A DNA stretch of 64,000 nt from Oopsacas minuta. Its lineage: Eukaryota; Animalia; Porifera. A model generated the notes under the pieces. It was not told where the DNA came from, did no database searches, and saw only the letters and a program-made list of their open reading frames with translations. Positions 7,578 to 61,626 of this stretch are shown here, piece after piece (positions within the stretch are counted from its first letter, which is position 1; each line of letters starts with the position of its first letter). The position numbers and the translations under genes are program-made. The DNA lies in assembly GCA_024704765.1 (NCBI GenBank), contig JAKMXF010000255.1:310001-374000 (forward strand), read 5' to 3'.

Positions 7578-7681
7578 GGTTTGTAGATAACTACAATAAT
7601 TAATCCTATATTTTAGTTACCTTCGAATTTCAATCAAAAGCATAATAAATCTGATTTATTATATTAGAATCTAATTAGGTT

Positions 7682-7811
7682 ATAACCTCCACTAACGGGA
7701 TGCCAGGGACGCCAAAAATGAACCTGTTTGTGGAGGTTCATTCATATGGGACTAGGAATTCTGCTATTTTATCATTCTGTTTCCAGAAGTATCCCGTTGG
7801 CGGAGGTTACA
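7682..7811. mobile_element. MITE family B (AACCTCCAC..GGG TIR)
   Basis: TAACCTCCACTAACGGGAT ... ATCCCGTTGGCGGAGGTTA inverted repeat; related to the copies at 43688 and 52966. Confidence 0.6.
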
Positions 7812-8279
7812 CTCTTAATTTAAAATATCAAAATTCGTCATTCCATTGAAGCGTTACCCATAATTTTTACAGATGTATCTCCTTCAAACATATGATTTCT
7901 GCTTAAAACCAATATTGCATGAATGTCTCTTAAATTATACAAATCAGTAAACCTGAAAAAACCCAATATTTATAACCTCAAATATCCCGTTTGTAAAATT
8001 TTTTGTATTGAATTGTAATACAACATATGTACCTATACACATCTCATGGTATCATTGAGGACAACACAATACAATAAGAATCTATAGCATGATACATAAC
8101 AATACAGTGGCGTTTTACAAGATACCATAATTCAGTATATGGAATAGACATAGAAACAACATTAATACAGTACTGTGTGCTATATGGACGATGGGTTGAG
8201 AGAGAAAGAGAAGTGCTGACATGGATCACATTAAAAACAATATCATTTGAGTTTGTACATTCAAAGTAAAGCCCCCGCA

Positions 8280-9848: not shown

Positions 9849-10003
9849 TGCACCAGGAATACAAATAAAGCTAATCACAAATTATACATATAATAATCAC
9901 AAATACAAAATTATTTGTATTAATACACGTATATTAAATGAATTGTCAGAATTATTTTGGGAGTTCCATTGGTTGATAAATAGAAATAATATTTGTGTCT
10001 TAA

Positions 10004-12191: not shown

Positions 12192-12379
12192 TTTAATATT
12201 CACTAATATTATTTAAAATAAGCTGTATAACTTCAATTTATAAATGTAATATGATTAGCTATAAGGTTCTATAAATAAGTTTCTACTATGTCAGTTTATG
12301 ACATCAATAGAAAGCAGAAAATACACAAGTTCTATGATGAAATAGCTAGTCAGGGTCCAAATCTAAAAATAGAAATTAA

Positions 12380-13642: not shown

Positions 13643-14104
13643 TATAATGCTCAATGAGTACTGAACAACCTTTTTCCTATTTATATCATCTAATTATTGT
13701 ATGTAATATTATCTCATTGAGTGATTAATAAGCTCTGATACTTAAAATAGTACTGTTAGTTACTAAAATTAGATCATAAATATTAATATTAAACATGGCA
13801 GTATTTGGTTACTAATTAAAATAGAGATATTAAATGGAGCTTCCTTTATTTAATTAAATATAACTGAGTAGACCCAGTAATGTCTTAAGAAAACGGTTAT
13901 TAAACAGCCCAGTTTTCTTGTGTGCAAACTCTCCGATTTAAATATCAGAGCTTACGAGTAATACCCAACGGGTCTAATACTTTAATCATTTACTGGCTCT
14001 GCGCGATTACCACAAATTCGTCCGTTTTCGATAAATAGCAATGCATTACATCACACTCAAACTAATCATTAAGATCGCAAAAAAGACAAATATTAGTTCA
14101 GACA

Positions 14105-15010: not shown

Positions 15011-15314
15011 TTGAAACAACACCTATTTATTGTTTGATATATGATAAATTGAATAAGATAACGTCCAGTTATTATTCAGGGAAATCCCGGGAAAAATTAG
15101 TGAGAGGGGTTGGTAAGCATCCAGTGTATGCATGTAAACGATCAAAGTATTTTCAAATATTAATATGATTCAACTAAAATAACAACAATATTAAGAAATA
15201 CAAATTAATATTTAATTGATCAAAAATGAGAAAACGCATTTAGTTAGTAGAAATTAACACAATTCTTTCCTTTTATTACTTTTGGTGCATTTCCATACCA
15301 TCTATATATATTTA

Positions 15315-18158: not shown

Positions 18159-19670
18159 ATTTGTTTCTAGACTCTATAATTACAATCTAAATTCGCTAAA
18201 GACAGACCAGCACTTAAATAGCACAAGAATTGGGATAACTTATATTAGCTAGTACAGTTCAATTCCCGAAAATGTAGACACACTTTAAGTCACAGGTATA
18301 TTCCAATTGAAAGTACAAATAAATCACCAAGAAAATATTCTATTTATATCATGGGAATACTCAGATTATGGGATTAGTGGTTAGAAGAGAATAGTTAATT
18401 TTACCGGGGGAACGTATATTGGCTTCAAAGACTATAAGTGTGTTTATTAACTGCCATGATAGGAGTACGTGTATTAAAAGCCAACGGATAAATGTTCTAT
18501 GGAACTCTTTCTTGTAAGGAAACTTGTATGTTCGCTTACGCTTATGTTTTGATTTGATTTGATTAGTTAATTATTGAATTACTTATTGTAGATGTAACTG
18601 GAGAATATACTGTATACTCCACCACTTAATGGGGTTACAACGGGGCCAGGACATTTTGAATCGGTTAGGCGGAATAAATGTGTTGCCCAGATTAATCGGA
18701 GTTGTTTATATGGTGCCTGATTATGTACCAGGTCTTGTAGTTAAGCAGTTACTAATTTTACAATTCTGGTAGGTAAAAGCCTATGAAATATTTTCTCACT
18801 TTATCTGGTAAATAACCTATTTTCTATGATTATTTAACATTGGGTAACATTTAAATGTGCATACTTAGATGATATCAACATTAGTAAAGTTTTGTTCAAA
18901 ATTCCATATTTAGTCCCTATAGAAGCTATGAATCCCAACATTTCAATGTAACTAGGATACTAGGGAATAGTAAGTTAGAAATTTATAATGTATAATCTAG
19001 AACTACGCTGTATACGTGATCTCTTGTTTCCCATACGTTGTTAGAATAGTTATGCGAATTCGGAAATTCGTATTCAGCATACTTTGTTACCACATTGTAG
19101 CCGTTAAGAGTAAGTCTCGACGAAGAATTAAAGATTTCAACTATTTGTTTACTTTATGTTCATAAAAACAACAATAAATTTACATTTGAGAAACTTGTAG
19201 ATGTTTTGAAACGTTTCAAAATGATGCTAGAATTTTCGTTTCAACTGCGAGTTAGGGGTAACCGATTATATAATTTCGAATTATATGACATTTCCAGATA
19301 TAGCTATATCTACACGATCTATCATATGATTAATAATATTTTCACACCTTTTGCTCAATACATAAGAAACATGACCCACATTCCCGAGCTGCACCACCAG
19401 TCTGCCTGTTGAGCATTTTGAAATAAAGTTAATTTTGAATGCACAATATAATTGTTAGTTAGCTATATTCACGATGTACACAATTAGCTATATCTCGGCT
19501 GAAAGTGTGTTGATAAGGATTTTGTTCAAAATTTCTTTGAATTGTATTCAAAAGAGTTCGATAAAATACACTGAGTGAATGAAAGGAATTAAACTCAAAA
19601 ATTAGCAAGCATTAGAACGAACAAATACATTAAAGTGTATGCATGCACGTGTTGAGAAATACAAGTCAGG

Positions 19671-22124: not shown

Positions 22125-22328
22125 TTTGTAAATATAGAGATTCTGGTTGCAATTACAATAAATAGCTATAATCTAAATTCGTGAAAATATTAAGTATCTA
22201 TATTTCAAGCTAAAGAAAACCTCGAAGTATTCAATGCTCTGTTAAGTATCAATAAGAAAGCATTCTCCTCCTCCATCAGTTATAGGTATTAATTTTCTCA
22301 TTCAAATCTTTAAATATATTCACAATTT

Positions 22329-23258: not shown

Positions 23259-23962
23259 ACTAAAGTTCATAATTATAATTATTAGAGATAGTATCTCTCC
23301 TAAAATTGTTAGAATTCTACAAAGAACAGATTTTGGGAATTTGCTTCCCTCTTGGGCCATTATCAGCCTTTGCTAACTGCCGCACTGGGATATTCCTAGA
23401 AGCAAAAATTATTGAAGAAATGCCTCAAGTAACTTACGAACCTTTGCAAGAGATAATAGCAAACTCTAAAATACAAAATGAACGAACACTTAGCTGAAAC
23501 AAATATACACAAATATATAAGCTATTGTGTTGTGAGTATGCTCGATGTGAATGATCACAATTTGTTGACAAAGTCTGTGAGAAAATAAGAAACTAAATAA
23601 GTGCGAATAAGGTGAGTAAGAGAAAGGAAATACGCGCTGAGTTTATGATAAATTCATGATATAGTGACTCTGAAATAGTGATCCTATATGAAAATAGAAT
23701 TATGAAGGCTCCCGTAAGTATAAAGAATCTCAACCAATTTTGTTATAATATCAGTGGACAAATTAAAATCAAGGAATACTAGCAAAAGGACTAAATACCA
23801 AGGTTGAAACCGATCGAACTGAATATCAGTATCCATGAATAGTTGCTTAACCGAATACTGAAATTCGCTTGGTAACCAAATATGAACTATTCGGTTGCAA
23901 CCTTGCTAAATAGTAAATACCAATAATATATAATTGTTTACTTTTAGACATAGTATAACAAA

Positions 23963-25108: not shown

Positions 25109-25712
25109 TAAAATTCTGATTATACATCAAACGAATTCTATTACTTATACTCAACCATGTGGATAATTGCGTTGCAAATCAACCTCGAAATAGAATTGCT
25201 AATGCATAAATACTGAGTGGTGAATGTGGTATACCTACTAATGGAGTTGCACAATTAGCTTTTAGGTTGTGATAGAGAGTGTGTTGTTGATTTAGAAAAT
25301 GGCACAGCTAGTTCGGTTTAATAAAATATTTGTATTATTGTAAATTTGTTATGGTAGATATGGTCTTAGTTGCAGAGTTTGAATACTAGTCTGTCAGCAT
25401 TTTGAAATATCGAAATTAGATGTTGCATATTAGTTAGTAATTGAATTGCCAACTACTAAATAACCAACAGATTATTCACACATATTTTGCTAAGACAGCA
25501 ATTTCTGTATAGTAAACGCAACTCCATACTCTTTACACATTTTAATCCGTGGACACATATTTGTATGATTAGACACAAATACGTATTATATTTTACATAT
25601 TATGAATTAATTAAGTGGAAAGTAGAAATCGTTGGTATAACCGACATTCTGCATATGAATCTATCAATTTTTATTAATTTGAAATCTAATATAATATGAC
25701 ATAGAATGTGAA

Positions 25713-37958: not shown

Positions 37959-38121
37959 CTAGTAGTATATCTGTTAAGAATACCATTGCAAGAATAAAAT
38001 ACAATTAGAAGGGAGAAACAGAACTATAAGTTAAAACATTATTTAAGATATAATTCAAATTTTAAGTAGTGTTAAATATTGCAATAATCCAGAAAGATAA
38101 GTGAAATGCGTATACGCTGTA

Positions 38122-38370
38122 CTATTCAGTGGGTGTATCAATAGGTAATAATGTCTGCACATGATTCATGAGGTCCTGATTACTTCCTTGTTCTAGAAAT
38201 TCTGCTTCCATACGAGAACGGACTTTACAAAAACTCAAAACATGAGCTAGGAACAAGAGACGCTCACATATAACAGGATTCTGAAATTTCAGTTTGTGCT
38301 TTCCGGAGAGAATACGTAAGTTGTCTGAGTTGTAGAGGGGTTTTCTCTTTGATTTTATTTTCGGTGCCAT
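38122..38370 (-). CDS. Small basic 82-aa protein, possibly a CENP-W-like histone fold
   Basis: ATG in an A-rich context; basic N-terminus (KIKSKRKP), hydrophobic central helix (ERLLFLAHVL) and a terminal NHV; the resemblance is by eye only. Confidence 0.4.
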   Translation of the reverse strand: MAPKIKSKRKPLYNSDNLRILSGKHKLKFQNPVICERLLFLAHVLSFCKVRSRMEAEFLEQGSNQDLMNHVQTLLPIDTPTE

Positions 38371-38431
38371 TTTTGTAATATATTTGTGTAATACAATAAT
38401 AAACAAATAGTCTAATTTCAATTGATATTTC

Positions 38432-38501
38432 TTTGAATATTCCTTATCTTGAGTATGAACTCCAGTATAATGAGTTCATACTCAGGATAAGGAATATCAA
38501 A
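38432..38501. repeat. Near-perfect inverted repeat (26-bp core stem with one mismatch, 9-nt loop)
   Basis: ATATTCCTTATCTTGAGTATGAACTC-cagtataat-GAGTTCATACTCAGGATAAGGAATAT. Confidence 0.9.
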
Positions 38502-38776
38502 TTTGATGAACTCAGCCCCAAAAACCGGACTTGAAAACGTACAATATTCGCAAGTTTTTTCAGGGACTTAGATTCCATTTTGTATTGGAAAAATTCTTCT
38601 AATAGTTCACGTATTAGCAAAGGAAATTCGTGTAAAATACTCTTGCTAATAGGCGATCTCCACGGTATAATTCATCAAAATCAACATATATAAATGCAAT
38701 GGATAACTACAATAGCGATAAAATAACAACAAACAAAATTCCAATAAATACAAATCCTATCTACTGACAGTTGATA

Positions 38777-39466
38777 TTACGACTTAACAACAAACTTATT
38801 AACACAACTACGTAGTAATTCTATAACAACTTTAGGATCATCAGCCTTAACAACAGCAGTACCAGCTACTATAAGATTAGCTCCTGAAGCAGCAGCTATC
38901 TCTATCGTATCTTTATTAATCCCACCATCTACCTCTATATTTAATGCTTTATTACTCTTACGCAGCTGTTCTATTTTAGGCATCATTTTATGTATAAAGC
39001 TCTGTCCACCAAATCCTGGATACACTGTCATGATTAGTATCAGATCTACTTGTTCAAGAAAGGGGAGTACTTTATCTATAGGAGTATCAGGCGATACACC
39101 TATACCTACTTCCATGCCCTTAGCTCTTATGAGTTTTATCAATTCTACCGGGTTCTTAGCAGCTTCTATATGGAATACATAACTATTAGCTCCAGCATCA
39201 CACATGTCATCTACCCATTTCTCAGGCTCTGATACCATCATGTGCATATCAAAGTATACATTAGGTAGTCTAGAACGTAAACATTTCACTACAGGAGCCC
39301 CGAAGGTTAGATTAGGTACAAAGTGTCCATCCATAACATCTAGATGTAAGTAGTCAGCTCCAGCTGCTACTAATTTCTCACATTCTTGAGCTAGACAGGA
39401 GAGATCTGAGTTCAAGATAGAGGGTCCTATTTGACAACTGGCACACCCTGATGACTTCAATGCCAT
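38777..39466 (-). CDS. RPE: Ribulose-phosphate 3-epimerase, intronless
   Basis: IGPSIL, LHLDVMDGHFVPNLTFG, DMHMMV, MTVYPGFGGQ, EVDGGI. Confidence 0.97.
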   Translation of the reverse strand: MALKSSGCASCQIGPSILNSDLSCLAQECEKLVAAGADYLHLDVMDGHFVPNLTFGAPVVKCLRSRLPNVYFDMHMMVSEPEKWVDDMCDAGANSYVFHIEAAKNPVELIKLIRAKGMEVGIGVSPDTPIDKVLPFLEQVDLILIMTVYPGFGGQSFIHKMMPKIEQLRKSNKALNIEVDGGINKDTIEIAAASGANLIVAGTAVVKADDPKVVIELLRSCVNKFVVKS

Positions 39467-39535
39467 TTCTATATTGTAGCAGGTAGCTAGCAACCTAGTA
39501 CACATATTATTATATTCCCTAACTGCGTATGAAGG

Positions 39536-39685
39536 TACAGTCCACTCCCGTTATATCGAACACGGTTATATCGAAGTCTTGCACAAATATGGCCCCAAAC
39601 CGCCAAAAATAGAATAAATCTCATCGGTGATGTTATATCGAAGTAATTATCGCGCTTGCATGTGCTCGATATAACATGCATTGTA
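39536..39685. mobile_element. MITE family A, reverse orientation, RPE-SDF2 spacer
   Basis: TACAGTCCACTCCCGTTATATCGAAC left TIR; degenerate right end. Confidence 0.7.
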
Positions 39686-39781
39686 TTGACTAAATCAAGT
39701 AAATCAATTCAATTCCCTAGATAACTAAAACAGCGTATAAACAGAATCAAATTCCTACAAATAATAATTATCTAATATAAA

Positions 39782-40429
39782 CTATAAATCATCATGGATA
39801 TGAAATTCTGACTCTTCATCATATGTTATCATCACTCCCTCTTCTACACTCCATTGGTTGTCCTTCTGTTTCTTGGCGTATCCACACACCTCCTTCTGTC
39901 CTGCTATAGGTCTACCGTACGTATCCCCAGGTACATGAAGATACATTTCAGTCAAGGCGTGTTTGAGTCTGATCTTATCTTTCTTCTTCCAGAATTTTCC
40001 AGAACATTCTAGAATCCAGTAGTCACCATTATCTCCTTCACTATTCTCTCCGAAGCAACTGACTTCCTGATTATGACTGAGTGGAGACGTAAAGTAGTGA
40101 CTATGTAGAAATAGCTTAGTAGCACTGTGCTGTAGTACTACCTTCTCACCACAGGATAAACGGGATCCTCTGATACACTGTTTATCATGAGGAGCTCTCA
40201 GGATCCAGTAGCTGTTGACGTCATCCATAGCACTGATAGCTGTAACAGTTTGTTGTCCACTGCCACTACCGCCACCGTATTTAACTTCGTGTGAATGAAG
40301 TCTTACGTTATGTCCGTAGTTGAGCAGCTTTATGAGAGAGCCACACGTCACGAAACTATCAGCTGACAAACTCAGCTTTATTTGTGTGAATATTAAGCAA
40401 AGCAAAATGAAGTATATGCTAAGCCTCAT
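39782..40429 (-). CDS. SDF2: Stromal cell-derived factor 2 / SDF2L1-like MIR-domain ER protein
   Basis: Signal peptide, VTCGSLIKL, RLHSHEVKYGGGSGSGQQTVT, LHSHYFTSPLSHNQEVSCFG, C-terminal HDDL. Confidence 0.93.
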   Translation of the reverse strand: MRLSIYFILLCLIFTQIKLSLSADSFVTCGSLIKLLNYGHNVRLHSHEVKYGGGSGSGQQTVTAISAMDDVNSYWILRAPHDKQCIRGSRLSCGEKVVLQHSATKLFLHSHYFTSPLSHNQEVSCFGENSEGDNGDYWILECSGKFWKKKDKIRLKHALTEMYLHVPGDTYGRPIAGQKEVCGYAKKQKDNQWSVEEGVMITYDEESEFHIHDDL

Positions 40430-40734
40430 TCTTTGAGTTATACTGTAAGTCAAGTAGCTGGAATTTAGATGTGAATTAACTTGGAAAGGGGCTAGTATGT
40501 AGAATCAAGTAAAGTGAAAAGATTACGAATTATTGAAACTTTCGTACATAGAAATATGTTATTCTGATTTTGGATACAGTAAAATTTTCGTGGTCAACTA
40601 ATATATAATTTGAATAATGTATCCTTTACCACACTATTCAATGGATGAGTTAAATTGAAATATTCTAAAATATCTTTTTCAACATAATGACATCAGCAAC
40701 TTATACTTGATTGATTTTTACCAAATTTAGAAAT

Positions 40735-42990
40735 CTAAGAATCCCATCTCTTCTTCTTCTTAGGAGGAGGTTTGATGAATGTTTCGTTGTTTAGTGTTGT
40801 TTCTCTACTAGGAGGTATGTTTGATTCCTGTTTTGATTCTAAATCGAATCTAGATTTTCTCTGTGGAGGTTTATCTGTATTATTAGGAATAGTAGTTGTA
40901 TTATGTTTTATTGTAGAAGTAGAAGCTAGATCTGATCCAGCAGATGCCTTAATAAACTTAGTCTTGTATTGTGCTTGGTACATTTCCATTCTACTGGTGA
41001 GAGGACCGCTTGGTTTATCAGGTGGGGTAGGAGTAAAATCAGTATCAGTAGACCCCAGTCCAGGACGTACCCTCTTCCTATCTTGCATTTTCTTACCTTT
41101 CCCATACCCCCATACACGCCTACTTTTCCTGAATTTAGAGATTTGCATAGCTAGCTGCATCAAGGGAGGAGGAACATCTTGGTTAACCCCCTCTAGATTC
41201 CTGACTAGACCCCCAGCAAATACCTTATCCTTCCCAGTTATCAGGGTGTACGCATCTCCCTTTTCACCAGCTCTACCTGTACGACCTATCCTGTGTGTAT
41301 GAGTATCAATAGTTTTAGCTACGTCATAATTAATTACAGTTCTAACATGTGGTATGTCAAGACCACGAGAAGCTACATCAGTAGCGACTAGTAACGGCTC
41401 TTCTTTCCTCTTAAACTTTCCAATAACTCCATCCCTTGATCCCTGGTCCATATCACCGTGTAGTAGTAGAGCAGTGATGTCACGAGTTTTGAGTTTACTA
41501 ACCAATATCTCAGAATCTGCCTTCTTTGTTACAAACACAATTACACTGCCAATAGAACATAGACTGATAATTTGTTTAGTTAACCAGCTCCACTTGTCTT
41601 CATCTCTCTCTAACATAATCACATGCTGAGTAACATCCTCATTGGCTTCTCCTCCCACACCAACACATATACGTATAGGATCTGTGAGTGCTTCTCTTGC
41701 CAGGGCTTCAACACGTTTGCGGAAAGTAGCGCTGAACATTAGAGCTTGTCTGTCTGGACGTATATTGAATACAATGCTTCTAACCTGGCCCTCAAATCCC
41801 ATATCAAACATCCGATCTGCTTCATCTACAACTAGAAATGTAGTTCTTAAAAGATTTGTGCATTTAGACTTTACAAAATCAATCATTCTTCCTGGTGTAG
41901 CTATCACTATTTCCGGTGCCTGCTTCAGGGCCTTAGTCTGTTCCCATCTACTCACACCCCCGTATATAGGACAACAGCTGATATTATAAGGCTTACAGAA
42001 CTTCTTAGTCTCATGATAGATCTGCTGACATAGCTCACGAGTAGGTGCTAGAATTAAACCAATAGGACCATCTCCTTCCTTCATCTCTTCCTGATCCAAT
42101 ACGTGCACAATAAGAGGTATCACATAACCTAGTGTCTTACCAGATCCAGTCTGTGCTATGCCTATAAGGTCACGTCCCTCTAGAGCAGCAGGTAACGCCT
42201 GCATCTGTATAGGGGTAGGCTGTGAGTACTGACTCTTAGTTAGAACAGAGGTCAGCTCATCACTAAGACCCAGATACCCGAATGAAATACAGGGGTGACA
42301 CGGTTTGGCGCCAGAAACTCTAAGTCCGTAGCACTCTCTAAGTGCATATACTTCCTTATTAGTGAGATTAGTGACGTCATCGTGTATCTGATAGAAATTC
42401 TTCTCAAATGGTTTGTAGTCTATATCCTCATGATTAACTCTAGGCAGAGGTTCTACCAGTTTAGGTTTCTCAGGAGTAATAGGAAATCCGTCGGAATCAT
42501 AATCAATCTCTTCATCATCTGAACATACAGGAGGTAGTCTGCTAGCTTGTTCCTCTAGAAATTGGAAGTATGTCTCTTGGTCGTCAGCTTGTTCTATGTC
42601 TTCGCGTACTGCTTTGTGTGATTTGCTGCTGTTCTCTACTCCAGCTTGTTTTGTTACCTGATCCTGTATTGAAGTCATGAATGCATCCAGAGGATCTTCC
42701 TCTTGACTGTCATCTGATCGCTTTTCCGATTTTTCACCCTCTCCTCCTGGTTCAGAATCACTGCTAGAGTGATTGAAGTATTCTTCTTCTGTTTGAAAAC
42801 GAGGCTGTTTCCCTGGCATAGGAGTAGTAGGGTGTACATATGTAGTAGTGTTCCTATCTCGTGTGTACTGTGGAGGAGGGGGATACTTCCTCTTACCGGT
42901 ATCAGAGAGAGGATTTGAACACAATTTGCTTTCTTTAGCAGAAGGGAAAGAGAATCCTGAAAACCCCATACCACGTCGTGCACCAGACAT
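40735..42990 (-). CDS. DDX42: DEAD-box helicase DDX42, intronless
   Basis: EDPLDAFM, AQTGSGKT, PTREL, DEADRMFDMGF, SATF, HRIGRTGRAG; C-terminal KKKRWD. Confidence 0.92.
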   Translation of the reverse strand: MSGARRGMGFSGFSFPSAKESKLCSNPLSDTGKRKYPPPPQYTRDRNTTTYVHPTTPMPGKQPRFQTEEEYFNHSSSDSEPGGEGEKSEKRSDDSQEEDPLDAFMTSIQDQVTKQAGVENSSKSHKAVREDIEQADDQETYFQFLEEQASRLPPVCSDDEEIDYDSDGFPITPEKPKLVEPLPRVNHEDIDYKPFEKNFYQIHDDVTNLTNKEVYALRECYGLRVSGAKPCHPCISFGYLGLSDELTSVLTKSQYSQPTPIQMQALPAALEGRDLIGIAQTGSGKTLGYVIPLIVHVLDQEEMKEGDGPIGLILAPTRELCQQIYHETKKFCKPYNISCCPIYGGVSRWEQTKALKQAPEIVIATPGRMIDFVKSKCTNLLRTTFLVVDEADRMFDMGFEGQVRSIVFNIRPDRQALMFSATFRKRVEALAREALTDPIRICVGVGGEANEDVTQHVIMLERDEDKWSWLTKQIISLCSIGSVIVFVTKKADSEILVSKLKTRDITALLLHGDMDQGSRDGVIGKFKRKEEPLLVATDVASRGLDIPHVRTVINYDVAKTIDTHTHRIGRTGRAGEKGDAYTLITGKDKVFAGGLVRNLEGVNQDVPPPLMQLAMQISKFRKSRRVWGYGKGKKMQDRKRVRPGLGSTDTDFTPTPPDKPSGPLTSRMEMYQAQYKTKFIKASAGSDLASTSTIKHNTTTIPNNTDKPPQRKSRFDLESKQESNIPPSRETTLNNETFIKPPPKKKKRWDS

Positions 42991-43305
42991 TAATAATATT
43001 TCTAGAATTAATATTACAAAATAGACGTATAAATATATTTCTGTATTACCGCATTAGTTACAGTAAATAGCCGATACGGGAACATTTCTCTAAATATTCA
43101 AAAAGATCACACACTTAACTACATCTTTACAACTTTGATAATGCCAACAACAGAAAGAATATTTTCAGATATAGCCATGTAAAATGGTTGAGCCACAAAA
43201 ATTGTGATAATTAATTAGATTTGTGGTAAAAGTACAGAGTAGTCCATTGATGAAAAGCATTACTAAAATCAACTAGAAGCAATATTGAATATAGTATAAT
43301 ATATA

Positions 43306-45196
43306 TCATGAAGTTTCTTGATGGGGTAAGTCCTGCTTAGCAGCAGTTAAACCAGTTTGGAATGCAGGATTAATAGGTGCAGGTATGAAGGAATCATGTG
43401 ATGCTACTAATTCTTTGACAATTTCAAAATTATTAGGACCAGCTTGTTTCCAAATAGTTACCCGTCTCTCATTGGTAGAAGCTATCAACATGTCTCCTGT
43501 AATGTTCCAATGTACTCTCCATACTTCTACTACTTGTTTGTCAACCTCACGTAAGGGGATATGTTGGAAAGTATAATGAAAATCTAAAATAAATTAGAAA
43601 TTTGTAAAGAGTTGATCTAGAGACTGATGAACTATAGACTAGGTATTACTAAAGGAAAAAGATCAATCTGTATTCATAAGAGAAATGTACAGAGGAACCT
43701 CAACACACGGAGTGCCAGTGACGCCGAAATATGCCATCCTATTTTCCCGATTATGAAGGTTCATTTAATGGGACAAAAAAATTATCACTCGTTTCCACAG
43801 ACCCCTTTGTGGAGGTTTCACGGTACACTTAATTACCAGATTCCGCAGAACTGCTATTTTCAAGAGGCTTAATCTTGACAACATAGAGTCCTATACCTCC
43901 TACAGCTAGAGAATGGTAGCTACGTCCCATCCAGTTAGCGAAACTAATATCGTTAACTTTACGGAACACATTCTCAGTCTGTTCATCTAATATAGATCTC
44001 CATTTATTGCTGGGTCTAAGAAGTATTACAGAACTAACTACAGATTATATTTATCCAAATAATGCTCTTATCATCAATGTATAGTAAATAGGAGACAAAG
44101 TTAAATAGCAGAATATTCAAGTGAAATATTAAAGTATTAAAGATTATTGTAGTAAATTAATGGTCAAATATGTGGAACGGCATTATTCTATTAAGGAAAT
44201 TCAGATGATAAATAGAGTTTTCTCTTTGTATTCCGAGCATATGCAACGGCAAATTTTTATTGAATTCCCTGAAATTGTTAGCTGTAATTACAGTTCTCCA
44301 AAAGGGATTATCATTTGTACCAAATTCATTATATGAAATCAAAGAATATTTGGATAAAGTCTTAAAGAAGTACATCAGCCAGTATGTACTACAGACGTCT
44401 TATCTGAGTTATATTGTACAACATAGATAAGAAACTAACACGTGTAGCTGATATATTCCGATGTGTTTAGCTGCAGCATTTGGGTCATCTGATCCTACAG
44501 CCAGGAGCATATGGAATAGACTAGACTGAGACCAGCAGATAGAGGAAGCTCCATTTAAACTCTGAAACTCATGAGATAGAGTCCAGTCATTCAATCGCAT
44601 AATATCCTTAGCTTCATATATACGTACATACCCATTATAAGAACATGATGCAAACTTTAAGCCATAATAATGTGGAGCAAATCTGACGTCACTCACACTT
44701 GATTGACTGTCAAGTCGTGTTATCTCTTTATCCCATTGAAGAGTATGCTTTCCTAAACAAAGATTAACTTAAACATCCAAACGTGTTAAATTTCGCGTTT
44801 GCCACCTGCAGAATCAATTCTAGTATTCTCCTGCCATATGCTGACACAACAGTCAAATGAACAGGTTACCAGCAGTTGTCCAAACTGTGGGTGTGCCCAG
44901 TCAATCCTCCAGATAGGACCCTTGTGTGCTGGGAATTTAGTAGTACACTCCCACTGACCATCAGCCTTTGTGTCCCAAACACAGACATGTTGATCAGCTG
45001 AACATGTCGCTAATCTCTGACCTGTTAAATATTTTATAAATCTCCCAAAGTGCATGTAACAGTTGGTTATTCAAATATGTAACTAACCACTAAAGTCAAA
45101 AGTAGCGTCGTGTATGGTATCTACATGAGATGTTGGGATAACTGTCTTTGTAGTACCAGACTTTTTAGGTTCTAAAATCGGGGTTTCCTCTGCCAT
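43306..45196 (-). CDS. SEH1L: Nucleoporin/GATOR2 subunit SEH1; exons approximately 45196-45088, 45021-44806, 44752-44440, 44015-43837, 43583-43306
   Basis: GQRLATCSADQHVCVWD, WAHPQFGQLL, DVRFAPHYYGLKFASCS, VWRVHWNITGDML WD40 pattern. Confidence 0.88.
43688..43825. mobile_element. MITE family B, SEH1L intron
   Basis: TACAGAGGAACCTC ... GGAGGTTTCACGGTA. Confidence 0.6.
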
Positions 45197-45556
45197 ACTA
45201 ATCAATACACAATAATGATAATATATGTAAATGTAAATACAGTAAATAACTCATATTATAACCAAGTAGGATATAACGAAACTCCCATTATAAATAAGTG
45301 ATACTATATCCCCTATAGCTAGAAAATAAGAGATTTTACTCAGCTTAGAACGAATTAAACCAAGGAATTCTTATTACGAAAGTTTCCTTGTAAATGCAAA
45401 CTGTATAATTAAACGCGAATAAATAAAGCTTCTGCATATGTTATTCAATTCAACAACAGGGCCGAACTTCGAAAGGAAAAAGTAAAACTTCGAAGGGAAA
45501 AGTCTTCTCGGCTAGGCCCAATCAAACTAATCAAACAAAATTGAAAATAAACATAA

Positions 45557-48500
45557 TCAAGGGTCTCCATCAGGCCAGTTAGAACCCTTCCATAGCTTAA
45601 CATTTCCTACACTCCCAGCTGAGAGAAGACATGAATGTTCATCAAAGAAATCTATAGCATACACAACACTCTTATCAGTACCGTGTTGTAATGACGTCAC
45701 TATTTCTTGTGTCATTAAATCCCAAAAGTATATCTTACCCTCTTCAGAACCACTAACAACGTATGCGTCTGTAGGACTGAGAGCTATACCAACTTTATAA
45801 TCTTTGTTCTTGTGACCTAAAATAGTTAATGTGTGTAGAGATGTACACTGCACAATTATAACAACAAATATTATATCGTGAGATTTACATGACATGGATA
45901 ATGTAAGTGGTAGACATCGGAATTCCACAACTCTCATTCATTGGAATTTTATCACAGACATAAAATTTGATATTTGCGTGTATTTTGGTGACTGATGTAA
46001 CAAATGGGATAAACAACCTATATACGTATAACTAAAACTTAAAACCTAATTACAATATCTAGAAAGGAACATCTGTTCACTATAAGTCACAGGCCAAAGC
46101 AGTACATATCAGAAAGTTGTTGATACAGTTTCATCTTTTGCATAGAATGTCGGTATATCTTCTATTGGAGAGGTATTGATATCGAAATACAGTCGGAATA
46201 TTAGATCCTCATCTGACGTTTCAACATATGTTTCTCCAAAACATTCACTTTGAACGCCTATTTTCAAATTATAATCCAATGAGAAAACTGTAACATCAGA
46301 ATTGTTTGGTTTATTCTTGTTAATCGAAAGAATACGACATTCTGTAATAGTAGATCTGTTACATAATTTTCCATCATAATCACCTGGTATCCTCGTTATT
46401 TTGAATGATATGATCCGTTCGATGCAATCTACACAAGCAAATACCTGTAGTTTGTAACCTTGGACATAGAAATCGGGACCTATGATATCTAAATCAGATT
46501 GAGAATAAAATGGTTTATACAAATGCACTTCACAACCATCTAGGTCTTTCTTGCATTTAAGTTTCAGCTCCATTTCATCAAGTCTCATTCCTAGAAGTTC
46601 TACCTGCTCACGTAACATGTTAATATGCATTATATGCTGATCCTTGTTATGTTCTGGTAATTCCTCTCGTTTGATATAAGAGTCACTACATTCTGAATAT
46701 GAATTTCGAATAAAATGGCAGAATAGACGAAATTTCGGACACTCCTCGTTATGCTCTTCAATAATTTCTCTTTCCATAACTTCACCACATTCATTAGGAC
46801 AGTCTACCAAGAAATTTGGACATTCATCCAAATGTGTAGCTAAATCTCTTGCTAATCCAGTGCGTTGGCAATATTCACAAGATATGTTTCGCATTGAACA
46901 ATAGTAGGTTTCATGCATAGCAACATCTCCTCTTTCATTAACTTGGTTACATTCTAGACAAAGTTCGAGAAAATATTGGCATTCATGTAAGTGCATTTCA
47001 GCTTCAGACAAACTTCCCTTCCACTCACAACCTCTCAATAAAGGACATCGTATTTGCAGTTTGGAAATAGAGTCCCTGATTTTTACAAGAGAATTAGGAT
47101 TGGTCGATTTGGAACACCCTTTACAAGTTATGTTTGAAGAATCTAGTACAGCTTCTCGTATAATACCCTCATATATGGGACATATTACATAACTCCTCTC
47201 CAATTCTGTTAAGTTTACAATCAAATAATCTTCTTTATACCCACAGTACCTCAGAAAAGGTTTAACTACATAGAGTAGGTCATTGCTACTATCCGGTATT
47301 TCCTCATTAGACAATAAACATTTCGCCATATTTTAGAATTTTATGAAAACAGTAATTTGAATTAATATGATATCTGAGCATATTTAATCCACTAATAAAA
47401 GTGATGCCAAATGTCAGGCTGTTTAAATAGAGGCTATACATACTTGTAGGTGTTTGGTTACAGTTTAAAGTAGACTTCCAGAGGATCGTAAAGACACACA
47501 GCGTTATCAAATGTGTTCCAAACAAGGAATGTTTAAGAACACATAAATTTGGAAGGTAAATAAAACTCCCTCGATTCCTCCTATCAGGAATTCACCTAAC
47601 CTACAATACATTCTATCTCACCTTTGTACACACATAGTGTATCTCCATTAGTTTTATCCAAAAGTCTTATATTGCTGTCTAGAGCTGCTGCTAGAATACA
47701 GTGTCTATCATGAGAATGTTTAGCATGTGGTACAGGGTGGTTAATATTAAAGAGAGATAATTCTCCTGCTCTTATGTCATAGCAACGTATTGTACCGTCA
47801 ATACTTGAAGTTAGAATCTCATGATCTGTGATGTCTATGCTAGATACACTGTCTGTTGCTTCATCTAGTACCTAAACGATCAATTCCATAAAATTAATCA
47901 AGGGACCAGTACAACAAATTGGATGGTACAGAGAAATTCGGCAACGGGCATTTTTCTCCAAATACGTACAGTCGAAATCGGGTTATTTCGTCGTTTGGGA
48001 AGTGCAATCAAATGGATAAAACAACCGATTTCGACTGTACTTGTATTCAGAAAAGGTCACACCCTGGACAACTAAATTTTTTAAAATTTTGAGCACACAT
48101 CAGCTGGACGAATATTCTTTGAGATATAGCAATGCAAAGTGCTGATCCACAAATAATCGCGGTTAAATAATTCCTAAGAACACAATCTCGTTATATTCGA
48201 CTGTTCGCAATAATCTATAAGATTGCTGTTTATATATGAGACACTTTAACCACCAATTATATAATGAATAACAAGTAGTACAATATGATTAGTACACTAA
48301 AGAATTTATAGAACAAGTATCGTATAAAAATTATTAGATGAAACAAGATATACCTGTATGGGATCAATCGCCTTTGATCTACAATCCCAGATTCTAACTG
48401 TCTTATCATAAGAACCAGATATAGCTATAGAAGAGTCACTATTGAATAATACACAATTAACACGATGCTCATGACCTCTGAATTTGCGTAGAGGTTTTCC

Positions 48501-48779
48501 AGTAGATACGTCTGTAAGTAGAACAAGTTTATCAATTCCACAGCTGATTAGGGTAGCATTATCGTGTGAAGCTGCGGCACCTAACACCTCTTGGGTATGT
48601 CCGGAATATTTCTTAATAAGTTTAAGTTTATGTGGATTCCATAATGCCACCATTTTATCAGCTCCACACGTGAGACAGTAGTGTCCGTCTTTGTTGAAGG
48701 ATACAGCCCGCACTGGACCTTCATGTGCCCCGCTTAACTCTCCATGTAGACGAGATGGTATTTTGTCCTTGAATAGCAT
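45557..48779 (-). CDS. WDR83: WD repeat protein 83 (MORG1); exons 48779-48354, 47871-47622, 45816-45557
   Basis: HEGPVRAVSFNKDGHYCLTCGADK, SGSYDKTVRIWDCRSKAIDPIQ|VLDEATDSVSS, YK|GHKNKDYK join in frame. Confidence 0.92.
46109..47329 (-). CDS. TRAF-type zinc-finger protein (degenerate RING, TRAF fingers, coiled coil, divergent C-terminus), intronless, nested on the same strand in WDR83 intron 2
   Basis: CPLLRGCEWKG..HLHEC, CEYC..HLDECP, CPNECG..HNEECP finger repeats. Confidence 0.8.
   Translation of the reverse strand: MAKCLLSNEEIPDSSNDLLYVVKPFLRYCGYKEDYLIVNLTELERSYVICPIYEGIIREAVLDSSNITCKGCSKSTNPNSLVKIRDSISKLQIRCPLLRGCEWKGSLSEAEMHLHECQYFLELCLECNQVNERGDVAMHETYYCSMRNISCEYCQRTGLARDLATHLDECPNFLVDCPNECGEVMEREIIEEHNEECPKFRLFCHFIRNSYSECSDSYIKREELPEHNKDQHIMHINMLREQVELLGMRLDEMELKLKCKKDLDGCEVHLYKPFYSQSDLDIIGPDFYVQGYKLQVFACVDCIERIISFKITRIPGDYDGKLCNRSTITECRILSINKNKPNNSDVTVFSLDYNLKIGVQSECFGETYVETSDEDLIFRLYFDINTSPIEDIPTFYAKDETVSTTF
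47967..48039. mobile_element. Short TA-CAGT MITE, WDR83 intron 1
   Basis: TACAGTCGAAATCGG ... CCGATTTCGACTGTA perfect 15-bp TIR. Confidence 0.75.
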
Positions 48780-49352: not shown

Positions 49353-52300
49353 ATGAATTGGATATATTTTGCGTGTGTTTGTTTAGCATATATTTCTGTT
49401 ACACAAGGAGGAAGTTCTAATTGTAGCAATAATGGCAATAAAACTGATATATTTTCAAGTTTCACTAGTGGAGTATCTGGTCATGTTATTTTCGCCACAC
49501 TTGTAATTCTAAATATTCTAATTCTGATCGGAAATCCAACTACAATTCTTGTAATTTTATTCAAAGAAAAGAAACCCTATGACATTCTAATTCTAGGGCT
49601 GGCAATGTTTGATACTCTAACCGGATTAATACCGTTACCAATCACAAACTATAACTATTTCTATTATTTGTATGTTAACAAGACTGTGGTAGACCAGTCA
49701 TACTTCATCAGTGGGGGTGAAGTGGGGTGTGCTCTGTATGGTTGGTCTGCTCTCACATTCAAATCTGGTGCTATGCTAATATTGACTATTATTCCATTTG
49801 AGAGGTAAGTGGAATCTAATATAATAATTCATGAAATAATGACACAATTAAATATATATATTAGCTAGAAATGTCTTATTTAAAATATTTCTTACAATGC
49901 AGTTTGCTCCTGAATCTTCAAATTAGCATTTGCAATTCTCTACACGCAAAAAGAAGTAGGAAATATTTGTAGATTTCTTAAGTGGAAATAACACAGTATA
50001 TATTTTATAAAAGAGATACAAAACAAGAAAAGGCGTGTATTGGTGTAACAACGTATAACGAAGCACACTATTATATCTTATTAATAAGACACATTGCCTT
50101 TTAAAAGTTTGCACATTGCATATTATTGCTAACCAAAATACTATTACGCTACGCCTGTAACCGTACACTGCCAGATAATGATATAATTGTTTAAGCACTT
50201 TGATAAATAGCAACCTATAATGCTAATTTCGAGTAGACTATATGTTGCTGAAACATAACTAGCGTAACATACGATGCTGGTTATTAAATTGCTAGTCTTT
50301 ATAGAAACGTTCGTTTAATATCTTTGTTCTCTACAGATTGTTAGCTATCAATTTTCCGTTTTGGTATAAAAAGAGTGTAAAGCTATGGAAGATCAGTTTG
50401 GTGCTAGTGGCTGCAATAATATTCTCAGCGTTCCACTCCCTACTACCTGCTATTCCTGGTATATCTGTTATGAAGCCTTACGGCACTCAGAAGTCTTACT
50501 GCCATTTTGAATATGATGAGCCAAATAATATTGGGTGAGTATTTTAGAATTTTTGGGAATTATAAATAATAGTAGAGTATATTTAACTTTTATCAATATA
50601 CTACCCTAGCTGATGTTCATGTAACAAAATGTAAATATGGGATATCAATGACATAATGAGTTTAATATCTCAAACATTGTATTGAAATCAATTTTATTGA
50701 TTACTATAGTAAGGACAAATTACGAGTATATAACTTCATTATGTTAATTAGAAGGCGTTCTGAGGTTGTATCGCAATCATTATGTTTCCCAATCACATCT
50801 AAGCTATATATATATATATACACATGATGTAATACAATTTATATTAAGAATTTACATACACCTGCCAGCCAAGTACATAGCTACAGTATAATACTAAGCA
50901 CTCGTGTAATATAAAATTACTACTGATTTGCTTAGATGGATATATGTTAAGGGTTTGATGTGGCCAGTTGTTAGTAGCAATTTACAGATGCAGACTAATT
51001 CTCTAATGTAGAGCTATCCCTTAGGGAGAATTAATATTTGATTAGTTATCTAACCTCAACATTACCATCTATAGCTCCACTAGGCATCCACTGGCTACTG
51101 TGTGTAACCACGTGCATTAGTTCAAAAGAAGTTGGAAATACACAATTTTAAGGATCGCTATATACCTGGAATAACAAATTTGTTGTGCCACTCAATTCAT
51201 GAGTGTATGATCTTGAGAATACAGTTAACTCCAGTTATATCGAAGCTCAAGGAACTGTGATAATTACTGCGATATAATGTATGTTGCTTTGGCAGTTTGG
51301 GTCCATATTTGTACAATTTCATATTTCGATATATCCGTGTTCGATATAGCGGGAGTTGACTGTAGTGACAATAACTGTCAATAAATGCGTATAGATAATA
51401 CAACCAAACTTGAGTAAAATAGTTATTTATAAGCTATATATCTTCAGGTCTGTTATCTACACATACTTCATACAAATATATGGATATGGCATGGTTCTAA
51501 CAGCTAGCTTCTGCTACACACTACTCATATGTAGTATCATACAGTTCTTAATAAGACGTAGACAATACACTACAAATAATAGTTCAAATAACAGCGAATG
51601 GGGAGTGACGAAGAAAAAAGAATTTTTATTATCGCTCAAGTTCATGTTGATACTCGTACTATTTAACATAGGATGGCTACCCTTTCTGGTAAGAATAATA
51701 TATTCATAAAATAGTTTCTAACCGAAATGAGTGATTTCAGATGGGGGATATTGCCAATTGACGTATCGGTTAATGAAAGGCTATTTTGACATACACATAC
51801 ACATGGTTATTCCCTCTTAATGTACAGTAGAGCTAGCTTATTAGCAACTCACTTAGTAGCAATATTTATTTATTTATTTATTTATTTATTAGCTCTCTGC
51901 TAATTGTGTTCACTTATTAGCAACTTCTCATAAACATAAGTTGCTAATAAGCAAACTTCACTGTAGTTGCCATCATCATCAAGGTATTTTAGAGTTGTGG
52001 TGTGTAGGCAATGTTTAGCAATTTGTTGATGGTTAAGTAGGAAGAGGGAGCAGCTACGTATAAGTTAATTATCTTCAATTCTAATGTAACCAGAAATTAT
52101 TATGTAAAATATCATTGTGGCTGAGTGAGAATTGACCACAGCAAATAATGAATTATTAATAGACAATAAATTTCTGTATTTAGGTCTCTCTAACCTTCAG
52201 AACAGTCCTACCTCGTTGTTCTGCGCATGAGGATGTACAATCTATTCTAGAATTCTTAGGTGTACGTATTGCTGTACTTAACTCTGTCATAAACCCAATA

Positions 52301-54161: not shown

Positions 54162-54590
54162 TTGTGTTAGAAAAATTATTTTATGTTTGATTCGGTCAGA
54201 ACAGTTATAAGATATATTCAGCATAAAATGTAGGCAAGAAATAGCAACCAATAGGATTGAGGTATTATATCCAGACAGCTGTGATTATTATCACGAATAT
54301 TGTAATTTATTTGTTAGAATATTTTTGGTGTTAAGTCAGACGAACTTTGCGTAAATATTGTATGTGTTCAATAGCCCAGTATTGTCAACATCTGTTTACA
54401 TACCAAGGTTGGTAAATAAACATTTCTGAGTTCAATATTGGTTAGGATTCTTTGTAAATGACAGAAATTAAACTGTAAATGATTATACTTCTCGGCTCCA
54501 TAGAAATTAAATGTATGTCCTTCAAAACCAAAAGAATGTGTATGAATTTTGTAAAAATAACTATTCATTATATTTTTATAGACTTTTGGG

Positions 54591-57688: not shown

Positions 57689-58583
57689 CACTGAGTAATA
57701 GTGAAGTAATGACTAAAATTACTATAATGAGAAATACGTCTGGTAACCAAATCAAGGGGGGGGGAGCTGAAACAAGTTTCCAACTAACAGTGGCCTAATA
57801 GATAGATAAGTTAGAATTTCAATATGACTTTCTGAGAAATAAGGAAACTCAAATAAAACATCATGAACACGTAAGTTAATACAACATAAGTGCTAATTAT
57901 GAATTAAGAAAGTACTACATGAACACAAAGTTAGGTGGCAGTTCTTAGAGAATTGATTTAATAATCCTAACATTCTGCACTTTCAGTATAAATAAGTCAG
58001 AAAGCTCGTGAGATTACATTCCTAGTAAAAATCTCATCTGACATGAATTCTTCCTCAGGGGTCACATTTCTATATCAGCTACAGTAAGGAATCTAACCAC
58101 TCACAACGGCTGGATGCTAAGTACTAGTAAGGAGTATCTTGACAATGAATGTGAATTAGCCAACAGCTGATTATTAAGTAAATTGCTTAGTTATAAAATT
58201 ACAAGTAATAATAACCCAATAAAGCTATATAAGAAGTGTTAATAATTAATATAAAGTTCAGAGTAAGACAAGAAATTTTCAGCTGCAACTATTTGTACCG
58301 ACAATCACAATTAGAAAACATTTAATGATAGATTTAGTAATTATTTTCGAATAAATATTAATAGCTAAGAACTGTAAAACTTTAATATGTATCAACATGT
58401 GGTTTGTATAATAAATACTATACTAGCTCAAAAATAAACATCCATTACCAATGGTGAATCAAAATTATCATAAAAGTAAGGATGATAAAAAGTATTTCGT
58501 TAAGACCTGACATTTTAATGAGTCAGTAAAAGATCTGTTTGGAGAGAGATATGCGCTTAAACTCACAGAAAAGCTGTCCACAG

Positions 58584-61304
58584 TTATTTACTAGCTAAAA
58601 TATACAAGTTAGCAGGTCCATCAACATTAGTGTCTTGACGGCTCTCAATTATGATATTTCTATCTGAGCCTAGAAGTTTGAAAATCTTTCCTTCTTCAAA
58701 GACTTCTGCCGTTACTTCCTCGTCAATTAGAGACTTAGCCTGCATCCCATGGTCATGGAATATCAAAATACATTCACGTAACCTCACATAGCCTTCTAGC
58801 TTGAATGCAAAGTTAATAATGTTCTTGTATTTACCTGCGAAATTCGGTTTCAGGACTCCTTGTAAACTAACAAACTTTACAATCTTGTCATGTACAACAA
58901 TGACAGTATCAGGTTCCAGCTGGCTTATCCCTGTCAGATTCATGAATGGGTATTCTTTTACGCAGGAGAAATGATTCTCAGTAGCATTTGGGTCAAACAG
59001 ATCATACGTCACGTTATTATTACCCGCATCACGTACACTAGTTATCAATACGGGAAGAGGCATTTTCTCAGCATTTGCATATACAAATCCTTCACAGATA
59101 TTCACTGTGTAGGGAAACACGAAATCTATGAGTGATTTTAGCATGAATATCTCTCTAGGCTCAAACCATTGTAGAATAATAACACTAGTAGCAGTTATGC
59201 CACAATAGTAGTACTCTCTACTGTAAGGGTTGTGTATCACAGCACAACACAGCGTGCCTTTAGAGCCCTTTACCTTAGTTGTGTGTTGGTATTGTGAATC
59301 TTTGAGTGATCTATCGTACATGTTAAGCAGTAGTGTCATACACATATAGCGATGAGAGCTGGTTATAGATAGCATTACATTTTGGAAGATCGATAGCCAC
59401 CAGATTTTCTTAGGGTACATCTGTTCCATCTCAGCATCCAATCTGTTGGTGAGTAGGAGAGAGTATAGACCTTCTATTGATCCTACTAACACGTACTTTT
59501 CTTTGCTCTCAGGGTGTATCCAGCTTGTAGCAGCGTTTATATGTAGAGGACAGCCATGAAATATTTTAGAGAAACAAGCTTGTGAGTCTTTACCTCCAAT
59601 TTTACTGATAGAACGAGGATTCGCCTGTTGCTTGGAGGGAGCTTTTGCGATAGGCGCTTTAGGAGGGAGTGGGGGAGGCTGGAATCCTTGTATTGGAGCT
59701 GATGACGTATGAATATCTCGTTTAGGAGGAAGAATAGGAGCCTGAGTATCAGTGGAACGGGAAATGGAAGCAGCCATATTAGCTTGAAACTGTGTGTGTT
59801 TATCGGTAATTGTTTCAGGATCTACGTAGCTGTAGTCATGCTCAGGCTCAGGAAGTACGGAAGATGTAGGGACGGATCGAGAAGACTGGTCCGGAGGGAT
59901 AGAGGGTAGGGGACGATATATGATGGAAGGGGGTTCAGTTTGCTTGGCTCGGTTGGGTACATCTCTCAGTGAGACTGGCTTAGGAGGACGTGGAGGACCG
60001 CTAACTGGATCTTGATAAAGTGAGTCATCATTCATCTCATCTTGAATACTGCCATATATCGGAACCTGTCCGTTTGGTTTTGGGACTGGAGCAGAGTTTG
60101 TTTGTGACAGGTTAGCCTGCTTTGCAAAGAGCTCTCCGTCTATATATGGTGTACTAGAGTTTGGATTATCCAAATCATCCTCAGCAGCTGAAGACTCCAG
60201 TCTGTGTATAAGAGGCTTCTGTACTTCACCCGGCACACTTATCTGTGCTATTAGACTATCATCTACTACTTCGACTTTACTTATCTTGTGAGCATGTTGT
60301 GAGGGAATTCTCCTTGGTACATTAACTGTTGGCTTCTCACTACTAGGTTTTGTTTGTTGCTCTGCTTTACTGTCTTCATCATCTTCATCACTGAAATCAT
60401 CTGTGATTACCCTCTGAGGAGGTTTAGGTGCGTATTTGAGTAGAGGCTTGATGGATTCTCTACGTACAGTAGTACGGTATACGAACGGATGACAGAGTGC
60501 ATTTGTAGCTGTAGGACGTTTCGAAGGGTCTTTGACTAGAAGGTGTTTTATAAACTCTTGGAATTCTTTTGACCATTTCTTCTTATCTTTCAAATTTTCA
60601 GGTTTGAAGGATTTCTTAGTCATAGTGTATAGGGCTGTCATTGGATGTAGGTCAAATAAGGGAGGTTGTGTCTCAGCTAGCTCGATAGCAGTAATACCTA
60701 CAGCCCAGATATCACATTGGGAATTGTAGCCGCCCTTCTTCTCAACAGCTGCTACCTCGGGAGCCATCCAGTAAGGAGTTCCTATGAATGATTTCCTCTT
60801 CATTGTCATTGTGAGTGTAGCTGATATGCCAAAATCTGCCAGCTTGACGTCACCATCGTTAGTAAGTAGAAGATTGGCGCCTTTTATGTCACGATGCATC
60901 ATACTAGCTTTGTGTAGATAATCCAACCCCCGTAGAGTTTCTCTTGAAACGAATGCGATTGCATCTTCTGGTAACGACCCAAACTTCTGATAGATATCTT
61001 GAAGGGATCCACCCCCACAATATTCCATAGCAATCCACAATTTTCCGCCTTTGAAATAACTACCGTGATAACCGACAATGTTTTCGTGCTTGCATTCTGC
61101 TAGAATTGCAATCTCTTGCTGTACAATATTGAAATCATCTCCTGCTTCAATTTTAATGGATTTCAGTGCAGCTAGTTCGCCTGTACTTTTCACTTTAGCT
61201 TCAAAAACTTCTCCATATGTGCCACTACCAATCGTCTTTATAATCTCTAACTCTTTGAGCGGATCTTTCCTCGAAATCTGCGGCAATAGCTTATACTGAG
61301 TCAT
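58584..61304 (-). CDS. MAP4K3: MAP4K3/MAP4K5 (GCK-I) kinase with CNH domain, intronless
   Basis: GSGTYGEV, HRDIKGANLL, KRKSFIGTPYWMAPEV, Pro-rich linker, ACFSKIFHGCPLHINAATSWIHP at the CNH start. Confidence 0.92.
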   Translation of the reverse strand: MTQYKLLPQISRKDPLKELEIIKTIGSGTYGEVFEAKVKSTGELAALKSIKIEAGDDFNIVQQEIAILAECKHENIVGYHGSYFKGGKLWIAMEYCGGGSLQDIYQKFGSLPEDAIAFVSRETLRGLDYLHKASMMHRDIKGANLLLTNDGDVKLADFGISATLTMTMKRKSFIGTPYWMAPEVAAVEKKGGYNSQCDIWAVGITAIELAETQPPLFDLHPMTALYTMTKKSFKPENLKDKKKWSKEFQEFIKHLLVKDPSKRPTATNALCHPFVYRTTVRRESIKPLLKYAPKPPQRVITDDFSDEDDEDSKAEQQTKPSSEKPTVNVPRRIPSQHAHKISKVEVVDDSLIAQISVPGEVQKPLIHRLESSAAEDDLDNPNSSTPYIDGELFAKQANLSQTNSAPVPKPNGQVPIYGSIQDEMNDDSLYQDPVSGPPRPPKPVSLRDVPNRAKQTEPPSIIYRPLPSIPPDQSSRSVPTSSVLPEPEHDYSYVDPETITDKHTQFQANMAASISRSTDTQAPILPPKRDIHTSSAPIQGFQPPPLPPKAPIAKAPSKQQANPRSISKIGGKDSQACFSKIFHGCPLHINAATSWIHPESKEKYVLVGSIEGLYSLLLTNRLDAEMEQMYPKKIWWLSIFQNVMLSITSSHRYMCMTLLLNMYDRSLKDSQYQHTTKVKGSKGTLCCAVIHNPYSREYYYCGITATSVIILQWFEPREIFMLKSLIDFVFPYTVNICEGFVYANAEKMPLPVLITSVRDAGNNNVTYDLFDPNATENHFSCVKEYPFMNLTGISQLEPDTVIVVHDKIVKFVSLQGVLKPNFAGKYKNIINFAFKLEGYVRLRECILIFHDHGMQAKSLIDEEVTAEVFEEGKIFKLLGSDRNIIIESRQDTNVDGPANLYILASK

Positions 61305-61626
61305 TTAGAACCTCTACACTAAGAAATATATACAAATATTATATCGAATCGTATTTATATAGATGTGGTTAAGCTAATAGTTGCCTGAGGTAGGACATAA
61401 TCAGTAATTCAATGAATACAGTGTAATGATAAAGTGATTAGAGGAAGATCTAATTTCATTCTGATTAAAGCTTATGATCATTTTCAATTAGCTCCTAACA
61501 AGCTGATTCTAATAACTATTTAGAGTTTTAAGAATCTTATCTCTCTTCCTGTATATCCTGCAAAGATTGATATATCGATACAGATTAATGAGCTCTTCCG
61601 GGATTCAATGAATCCTCCTATAAAAT

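Follow-up and report, generated by a model that had tools for sequence, protein, structure and literature searches.

Spliced-leader (SL) trans-splicing is already known for glass sponges. PMC7986045 lists hexactinellids as having it, with no operons reported in sponges, and both this paper and PMC5619915 cite Douris et al. 2010 for the process in this class. For Aphrocallistes vastus, PMC10282587 describes a leader of ~37 bp in long cDNA reads and many nested genes, and it remarks that nested genes are very few in the annotation of Oopsacas minuta. The genome preprint of O. minuta itself makes no mention of splicing, leaders, operons or nested genes. The subject of this analysis is a stretch of 64,000 nucleotides from O. 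minuta contig JAKMXF010000255.1 (GCA_024704765.1), positions 310001–374000, referred to here as the window (record coordinate = window coordinate + 310000), and the YAG trinucleotides (TAG or CAG) that stand directly upstream of most of its start codons. Exact protein matches assign the window to this contig, and PMC10282587 names JAKMXF01 as the assembly of O. minuta. The window is AT-rich, with a G+C content of ~35%, and is tightly packed with genes of animal type, as judged from Pfam domains. Most of the start-proximal YAGs are probably 3′ splice sites that lack a partner donor and to which an SL RNA from another locus supplies its capped leader, and at one of them, upstream of DDX42, the junction with a non-genomic leader is directly observed in RNA.

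Four runs from one sample (X1–X4) cover the window, and their contigs were placed on positions 37501–43500. X1–X3 are DNA-like; X4 is RNA-like, with adapter ends and a depth that depends on the gene. The RNA contigs cover DDX42 from 42111 to 43003. One of them (X4 record 32; 173 nt) has a depth of ~960, compared with ~1,100–1,450 in the body of the gene, and matches the genome at 42842–43003 before it continues into 11 letters that are foreign to the genome there; in coding orientation these are AAAAAACTTAC, with the AG at 43003–43002 next. The genome reads ...taattcTAG at this point, and the RNA departs from it precisely at the AG that had been predicted, 11 nt ahead of the ATG. The junction TAG (43004–43002) is preceded by 6 T among 12 nt and by an AG-free zone of 37 nt. 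Just upstream of the gene, across 43101–43300, the X4 depth is 0.

The 13-nt leader end has no match with two or fewer mismatches in 28 kb upstream (window positions 43004–64000 plus locus L003), which argues against a nearby cis exon as its source. The only hit in the window and L003, with a single mismatch, falls at 2279–2291 within the coding part of NF-kB, 40 kb downstream, and was rejected as the origin of the leader. An Rfam search of the window returned no RNA family, and hence no SL RNA or small nuclear RNA gene within it. The unbranched contig across the junction, with nothing assembled just upstream, suggests that the leader is present on most DDX42 mRNA; its own end may be AG. The leader-bearing contig (43002–43014, − strand) halts after 11 (+2) leader letters, although up to 30 would fit in a unitig; this early halt may reflect several leader variants whose sequences part ~14 nt before the 3′ end, for instance through A-runs of unequal length. 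The initial annotation of this DNA had interpreted the YAGs as sites of SL trans-splicing and had advised looking for a non-genomic leader at their AGs. Such a leader is joined exactly at the DDX42 AG, the single site that could be inspected, and the interpretation is supported, with direct RNA evidence at this site.

The distances from YAG to ATG were then counted for a set of 25 gene starts. The start codons were those of the deposited NCBI annotation, which had been chosen without trans-splicing in mind, and three models (DDX42, POLD1/PNISR and WDR83) were corrected by homology and RNA, with the exons used unjoined in the homology searches. A YAG lies within 22 nt of the ATG in 18–19 of the 25 genes and within 13 nt in 15–16. 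The higher count of 19 arises because the annotated GPCR start at 49605 replaces the first ATG of that open reading frame (ORF), at 49353, which has no YAG closer than 45 nt. The 19 proximal YAGs comprise 15 TAG and four CAG, the same form as in the cis acceptors deduced for these genes. All 18 distances that the initial annotation had listed were recovered by the recount, and its total of 18 genes became 18–19. Its exceptions stood for NF-kB (87 nt), NARS2 (34 nt), the small ORF (41 nt), the TRAF-like gene (44 nt), WDR83 (61 nt) and the Frag1/TMEM150-like gene (117 nt from the ATG, 54 nt from an earlier one); the GPCR is an exception only from its first ATG and not from the annotated one. These exception genes may have longer 5′ untranslated regions (UTRs) or non-YAG acceptors, or may not be trans-spliced.

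The proximal YAGs were further compared with ordinary splice acceptors of the same genes. Introns were assigned by dynamic programming from the annotated protein lengths, with which the resulting models agree, and a position matrix was trained on 29 canonical-looking cis acceptors. Several solutions with AAG or GAG acceptors (in FBXW7, SEH1L, UBE2G1, the orphan gene and the GPCR) were probably wrong and were left out of the training. For the M16 peptidase gene, the intron assigned at 37668–37400 agrees with a loose end of the RNA contigs. The median matrix score of the start-proximal YAGs is −1.8, compared with −3.7 for other intergenic YAGs (p 0.017). Their upstream AG-free zone has a median of 21 nt versus 15 nt (p 0.018), and the T fraction in the 12 nt upstream is 0.42 versus 0.33 (p 0.03). 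The start-proximal YAGs are thus modestly more acceptor-like than the others, which is supportive.

Resemblance to cis acceptors would equally be expected of short cis-spliced introns in the 5′ UTRs, where each YAG would pair with a non-coding first exon upstream in the same gene. In the deposited annotation, the donor of POLD1 exon 1 at 33658 is joined to the proximal AG of PNISR, 9 nt ahead of its ATG, and at least one acceptor is therefore plausibly used in cis. The PNISR acceptor may in fact serve both in trans and in cis with this donor. As a general explanation, however, cis splicing is very improbable: the sequence joined at the DDX42 AG is found nowhere in the 28 kb upstream, the RNA contig depth directly upstream of that gene is zero, and the upstream neighbour is in many cases just 200–315 nt away, and once 96 nt, which leaves little space for a first exon with its promoter and intron.

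The frequency of the YAGs was evaluated against several expectations. In dinucleotide shuffles of the 120 nt upstream of each gene, the 22-nt count averages 11.3 ± 2.3, compared with the observed 19, which is reached in 3 of 2000 shuffles; the 13-nt count averages 7.7 ± 2.2, compared with 16, which is reached in 1 of 2000. The comparison with shuffled controls that the initial annotation had recommended therefore places the YAG excess above nearly all of the 2000 shuffles. Among intergenic ATGs on the same strand, a YAG stands within 22 nt in 38% of cases (for the gene starts, binomial p 1.5e-4), and the intergenic YAG density of 0.023 per nt gives a geometric expectation of 42%; the rough chance level of 40–50% assumed at the outset was thus a fair one for non-coding DNA. 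In the last 16 nt before the ATG, none of the 64 trinucleotides is more enriched than TAG, which ranks first (13 genes versus 5.0 expected). The distances are scattered across 0–22 nt, which means that the pattern does not represent a fixed start-codon context.

A purely compositional origin was considered on the same data. AT-rich non-coding DNA contains many TAGs, and the choice of the first ATG after a stop favours an in-frame TAG, so that the YAGs could be without function. Two controls speak for this explanation. A YAG is present within 22 nt of 57% of all ATGs in the window and of 61% of the first ATGs of spurious ORFs, and the observed 76% then gives a weak excess for the gene starts, with p 0.04 and p 0.09, respectively. 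Both controls are inflated because they include coding sequence, where CAG is common. The non-coding controls lie at 38–45%, and the observed count is reached in 0–10 of 2000 shuffles. Moreover, an in-frame TAG stop accounts for only five of the 19 proximal YAGs, so that the definition of the ORFs does not explain the pattern, and one of the sites is used in RNA. Chance is accordingly very improbable as an explanation of the whole, and the YAG excess before the ATGs is genuine but moderate, on 25 genes.

It is most improbable that the YAGs are initiator-like motifs of compact promoters, with mRNAs beginning at the YA(G) a few bases before the ATG, since the DDX42 RNA runs on past the site into foreign sequence and an initiator has no need for an upstream T-rich tract or AG-free zone, even though the 5′ UTRs are evidently very short and the RNA depth falls ~1800-fold between the RPE body (~11,500 in X4) and position 39560 (6.3), as a nearby start site would produce.

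In the trans-splicing mechanism that we favour, a small SL RNA encoded elsewhere in the O. minuta genome would donate its capped 5′ exon to YAGs that have no partner donor. The 3′ end of the leader would read ...AAAAAACTTAC, followed either by an AG of its own or directly by that of the acceptor. The outron upstream of the acceptor would be thrown away, and the mature mRNA would consist of the leader and 0–22 nt of gene-specific 5′ UTR, with the start codon as the first AUG past the junction. In the gene for such an SL RNA, the leader would be expected to be followed by a GT donor and then by an Sm-binding site (AAUUUUGG-like); genes of this kind often stand in tandem arrays. By analogy with DDX42, the remaining 17–18 sites would be used alike, would share the leader and would owe it to the same SL RNA.

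Several observations weigh against trans-splicing at most of these sites, in addition to the controls with all ATGs and with spurious ORFs. A single junction is seen among the 18–19 sites, within a survey of the 24 loose contig ends listed out of 167, and the leader is known from 11 (+2) letters on one mRNA. No SL RNA gene was found, with the search for the leader end covering the window and L003. Six to seven genes have no YAG inside 22 nt of their ATG. The candidates are weaker than the cis acceptors, whose matrix score has a median of 0.66 (leave-one-out) compared with −1.8. Finally, the leader of A. vastus occurs on only 4% of long reads, according to PMC10282587.

The acceptors and the RNA help to repair the annotation, in which three deposited models are wrong. 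The deposited DDX42 (40735–42990, − strand), which begins at ATG 42204 and has 489 aa, lacks its 5′ part: an uninterrupted ORF of 751 aa starts at ATG 42990. The DEAD domain begins at residue 259 of the longer product, and the shorter model would cut it. The deposited PNISR-like protein of 709 aa from 34093 (− strand) is a chimera of POLD1 exon 1 and the PNISR-like gene. Its first 145 aa align to residues 91–154 of human POLD1 (E 3e-9), and the ORF piece 31655–31413 aligns to residues 165–230; exon 1 of POLD1 therefore corresponds to 34093–33659 and intron 1 to 33658–31656. The PNISR-like gene itself runs from ATG 33564 to a stop at 31879, within this intron and in the same orientation. Deposited POLD1 (963 aa) is missing its true first exon, and its start at 31782, which has a CAG 3 nt upstream, was discarded as spurious, given that exon 1 lies at 34093–33659 and the next conserved exon begins at 31655.

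The deposited WDR83 is split into genes of 233 and 112 aa (45557–48779, − strand). The 112-aa WD "gene" (45895–45557) was not accepted as a separate start, as it matches WDR83 residues 230–306 and thus forms the last part of WDR83. A TRAF-like gene (47329–46109, − strand) lies between the two WDR83 pieces, nested in an intron on the same strand. POLD1 exon 1 at 34093, the nested PNISR and a WDR83 with a nested TRAF-like gene had all been read from the letters in the initial annotation, and the alignments to human POLD1 and to WDR83 show these models to be better than the deposited ones.

The genes from NF-kB to WDR83 form a long run on one strand (Table 1), in which two genes, PNISR in POLD1 and the TRAF-like gene in WDR83, are nested in hosts of the same strand. 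AATAAA and ATTAAA are absent from most gaps of this run, and the polyadenylation signal of the sponge may differ from the canonical one. The RNA contigs leave the WD364–DDX42 and DDX42–SDF2 gaps unbridged, with an X4 depth of 0 in two of the four gaps inspected (across 40501–40700 in the region upstream of SDF2), although contigs cannot prove absence. One X4 contig (38403–38789, − strand; depth 78) extends from inside the RPE coding end over the gap to just upstream of a small-ORF transcript, and is a read-through or precursor transcript, ~1% as abundant as the RNA of the flanking genes. That the 47-kb run is transcribed in one polycistronic unit or a few of them, which SL trans-splicing before each ATG would divide into mRNAs, is a tentative proposal and rather unlikely. 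If true, it would mean operons in a sponge, where PMC7986045 says that none are reported.

The small ORF (82 aa; ATG 38370 to stop 38122, − strand) lies in an unannotated transcript at 38101–38500 with an X4 depth of ~11,000, and has no match in Pfam, the protein atlas or Rfam. The transcript may encode a small protein or be non-coding. Judged from the way in which unitigs break, X4 record 25, which ends at 38403, would be compatible with a junction at the AAG 38432–38431, provided that the leader ends in AG. In the same region, many DNA contigs branch at 38550–38591 and 39535–39653, which points to dispersed repeats; in the latter segment, the motif ttcgatataac recurs immediately upstream of RPE. 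Runs X1 and X2, both of DNA, additionally reveal an allele with a 68-bp deletion (39566–39633) and an A>G variant at 39560.

Table 1. Start-proximal YAGs, reference intron and gene run in the window (window coordinates; distances are from the YAG to the ATG).
Feature	Coordinates	Strand	Description
Run of 21 consecutive genes, NF-kB to WDR83	1272–48779	−	Stop-to-ATG gaps 96–1512 nt, median ~310
PDPK1, candidate acceptor TAG	7591–7593	−	13 nt before ATG 7577
UBE2G1, candidate acceptor TAG	9871–9873	−	22 nt before ATG 9848; upstream AG-free zone 126 nt
CHMP4/Snf7, candidate acceptor TAG	12203–12205	−	11 nt before ATG 12191
PNKP, candidate acceptor CAG	13661–13663	−	18 nt before ATG 13642
TPR gene, candidate acceptor TAG	15023–15025	−	12 nt before ATG 15010, in-frame; upstream AG-free zone 149 nt
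CNK (SAM-PDZ-PH), candidate acceptor TAG	18167–18169	−	8 nt before ATG 18158
FBXW7, candidate acceptor CAG	22143–22145	−	18 nt before ATG 22124
Sirtuin (SIRT), candidate acceptor TAG	23260–23262	−	1 nt before annotated ATG 23258
NHL-repeat gene, candidate acceptor CAG	25116–25118	−	7 nt before ATG 25108
PNISR-like gene, acceptor TAG	33574–33576	−	9 nt before ATG 33564
POLD1, candidate acceptor TAG	34099–34101	−	5 nt before ATG 34093; upstream T-rich tract and 104-nt AG-free zone
M16 peptidase, ordinary cis intron GT...TAG	37400–37668	−	Reference acceptor; X4 loose end at 37669 is the start of the next exon
M16 peptidase, candidate acceptors	37959–37973	−	TAG adjoining ATG 37958 (0 nt) and CAG at 12 nt
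RPE, candidate acceptor TAG	39469–39471	−	2 nt before annotated ATG 39466
SDF2 (MIR domain), candidate acceptor CAG	40443–40445	−	13 nt before ATG 40429
DDX42, trans-splice acceptor TAG	43002–43004	−	11 nt before ATG 42990; sole junction seen in RNA
SEH1L-like WD gene, candidate acceptor TAG	45198–45200	−	1 nt before ATG 45196
GPCR, TAG, ambiguous	49594–49596	+	8 nt before annotated ATG 49605
Orphan 337-aa gene, candidate acceptor TAG	54579–54581	+	9 nt before ATG 54591; top acceptor score of the set
MAP4K, candidate acceptor TAG	61314–61316	−	9 nt before ATG 61304; second TAG at 14 nt

These data confirm on this DNA that a glass sponge uses SL trans-splicing, and suggest that most genes do so with an acceptor that nearly touches the start codon. 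They also raise, for O. minuta, the question whether its extended runs of genes on one strand are operons. Within the genome itself, the start-proximal YAGs are analogous to the ordinary cis acceptors in being YAG, mostly TAG, after a T-rich stretch and an AG-free zone; by contrast, they have no upstream donor in the same gene, and their tract is weaker on average. The arrangement corresponds to hexactinellid SL trans-splicing, from the same animal class, in the short foreign leader at a 3′ acceptor upstream of the coding region and in the compact genome with nested genes. In A. vastus, however, the leader is found on 4% of long reads, with the acceptor geometry not given, whereas here about three-quarters of the genes have an acceptor within 22 nt of the ATG. 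Acceptors near the start codon, short 5′ UTRs, co-oriented runs and a compact genome are likewise shared with Caenorhabditis elegans SL1/SL2, Oikopleura and Ciona. The gaps here are mostly 200–700 nt, compared with about 100 nt in the operons of nematodes, Oikopleura and Ciona, and, unlike in nematode operons of the SL2 type, there is no sign here of a second, operon-specific leader.

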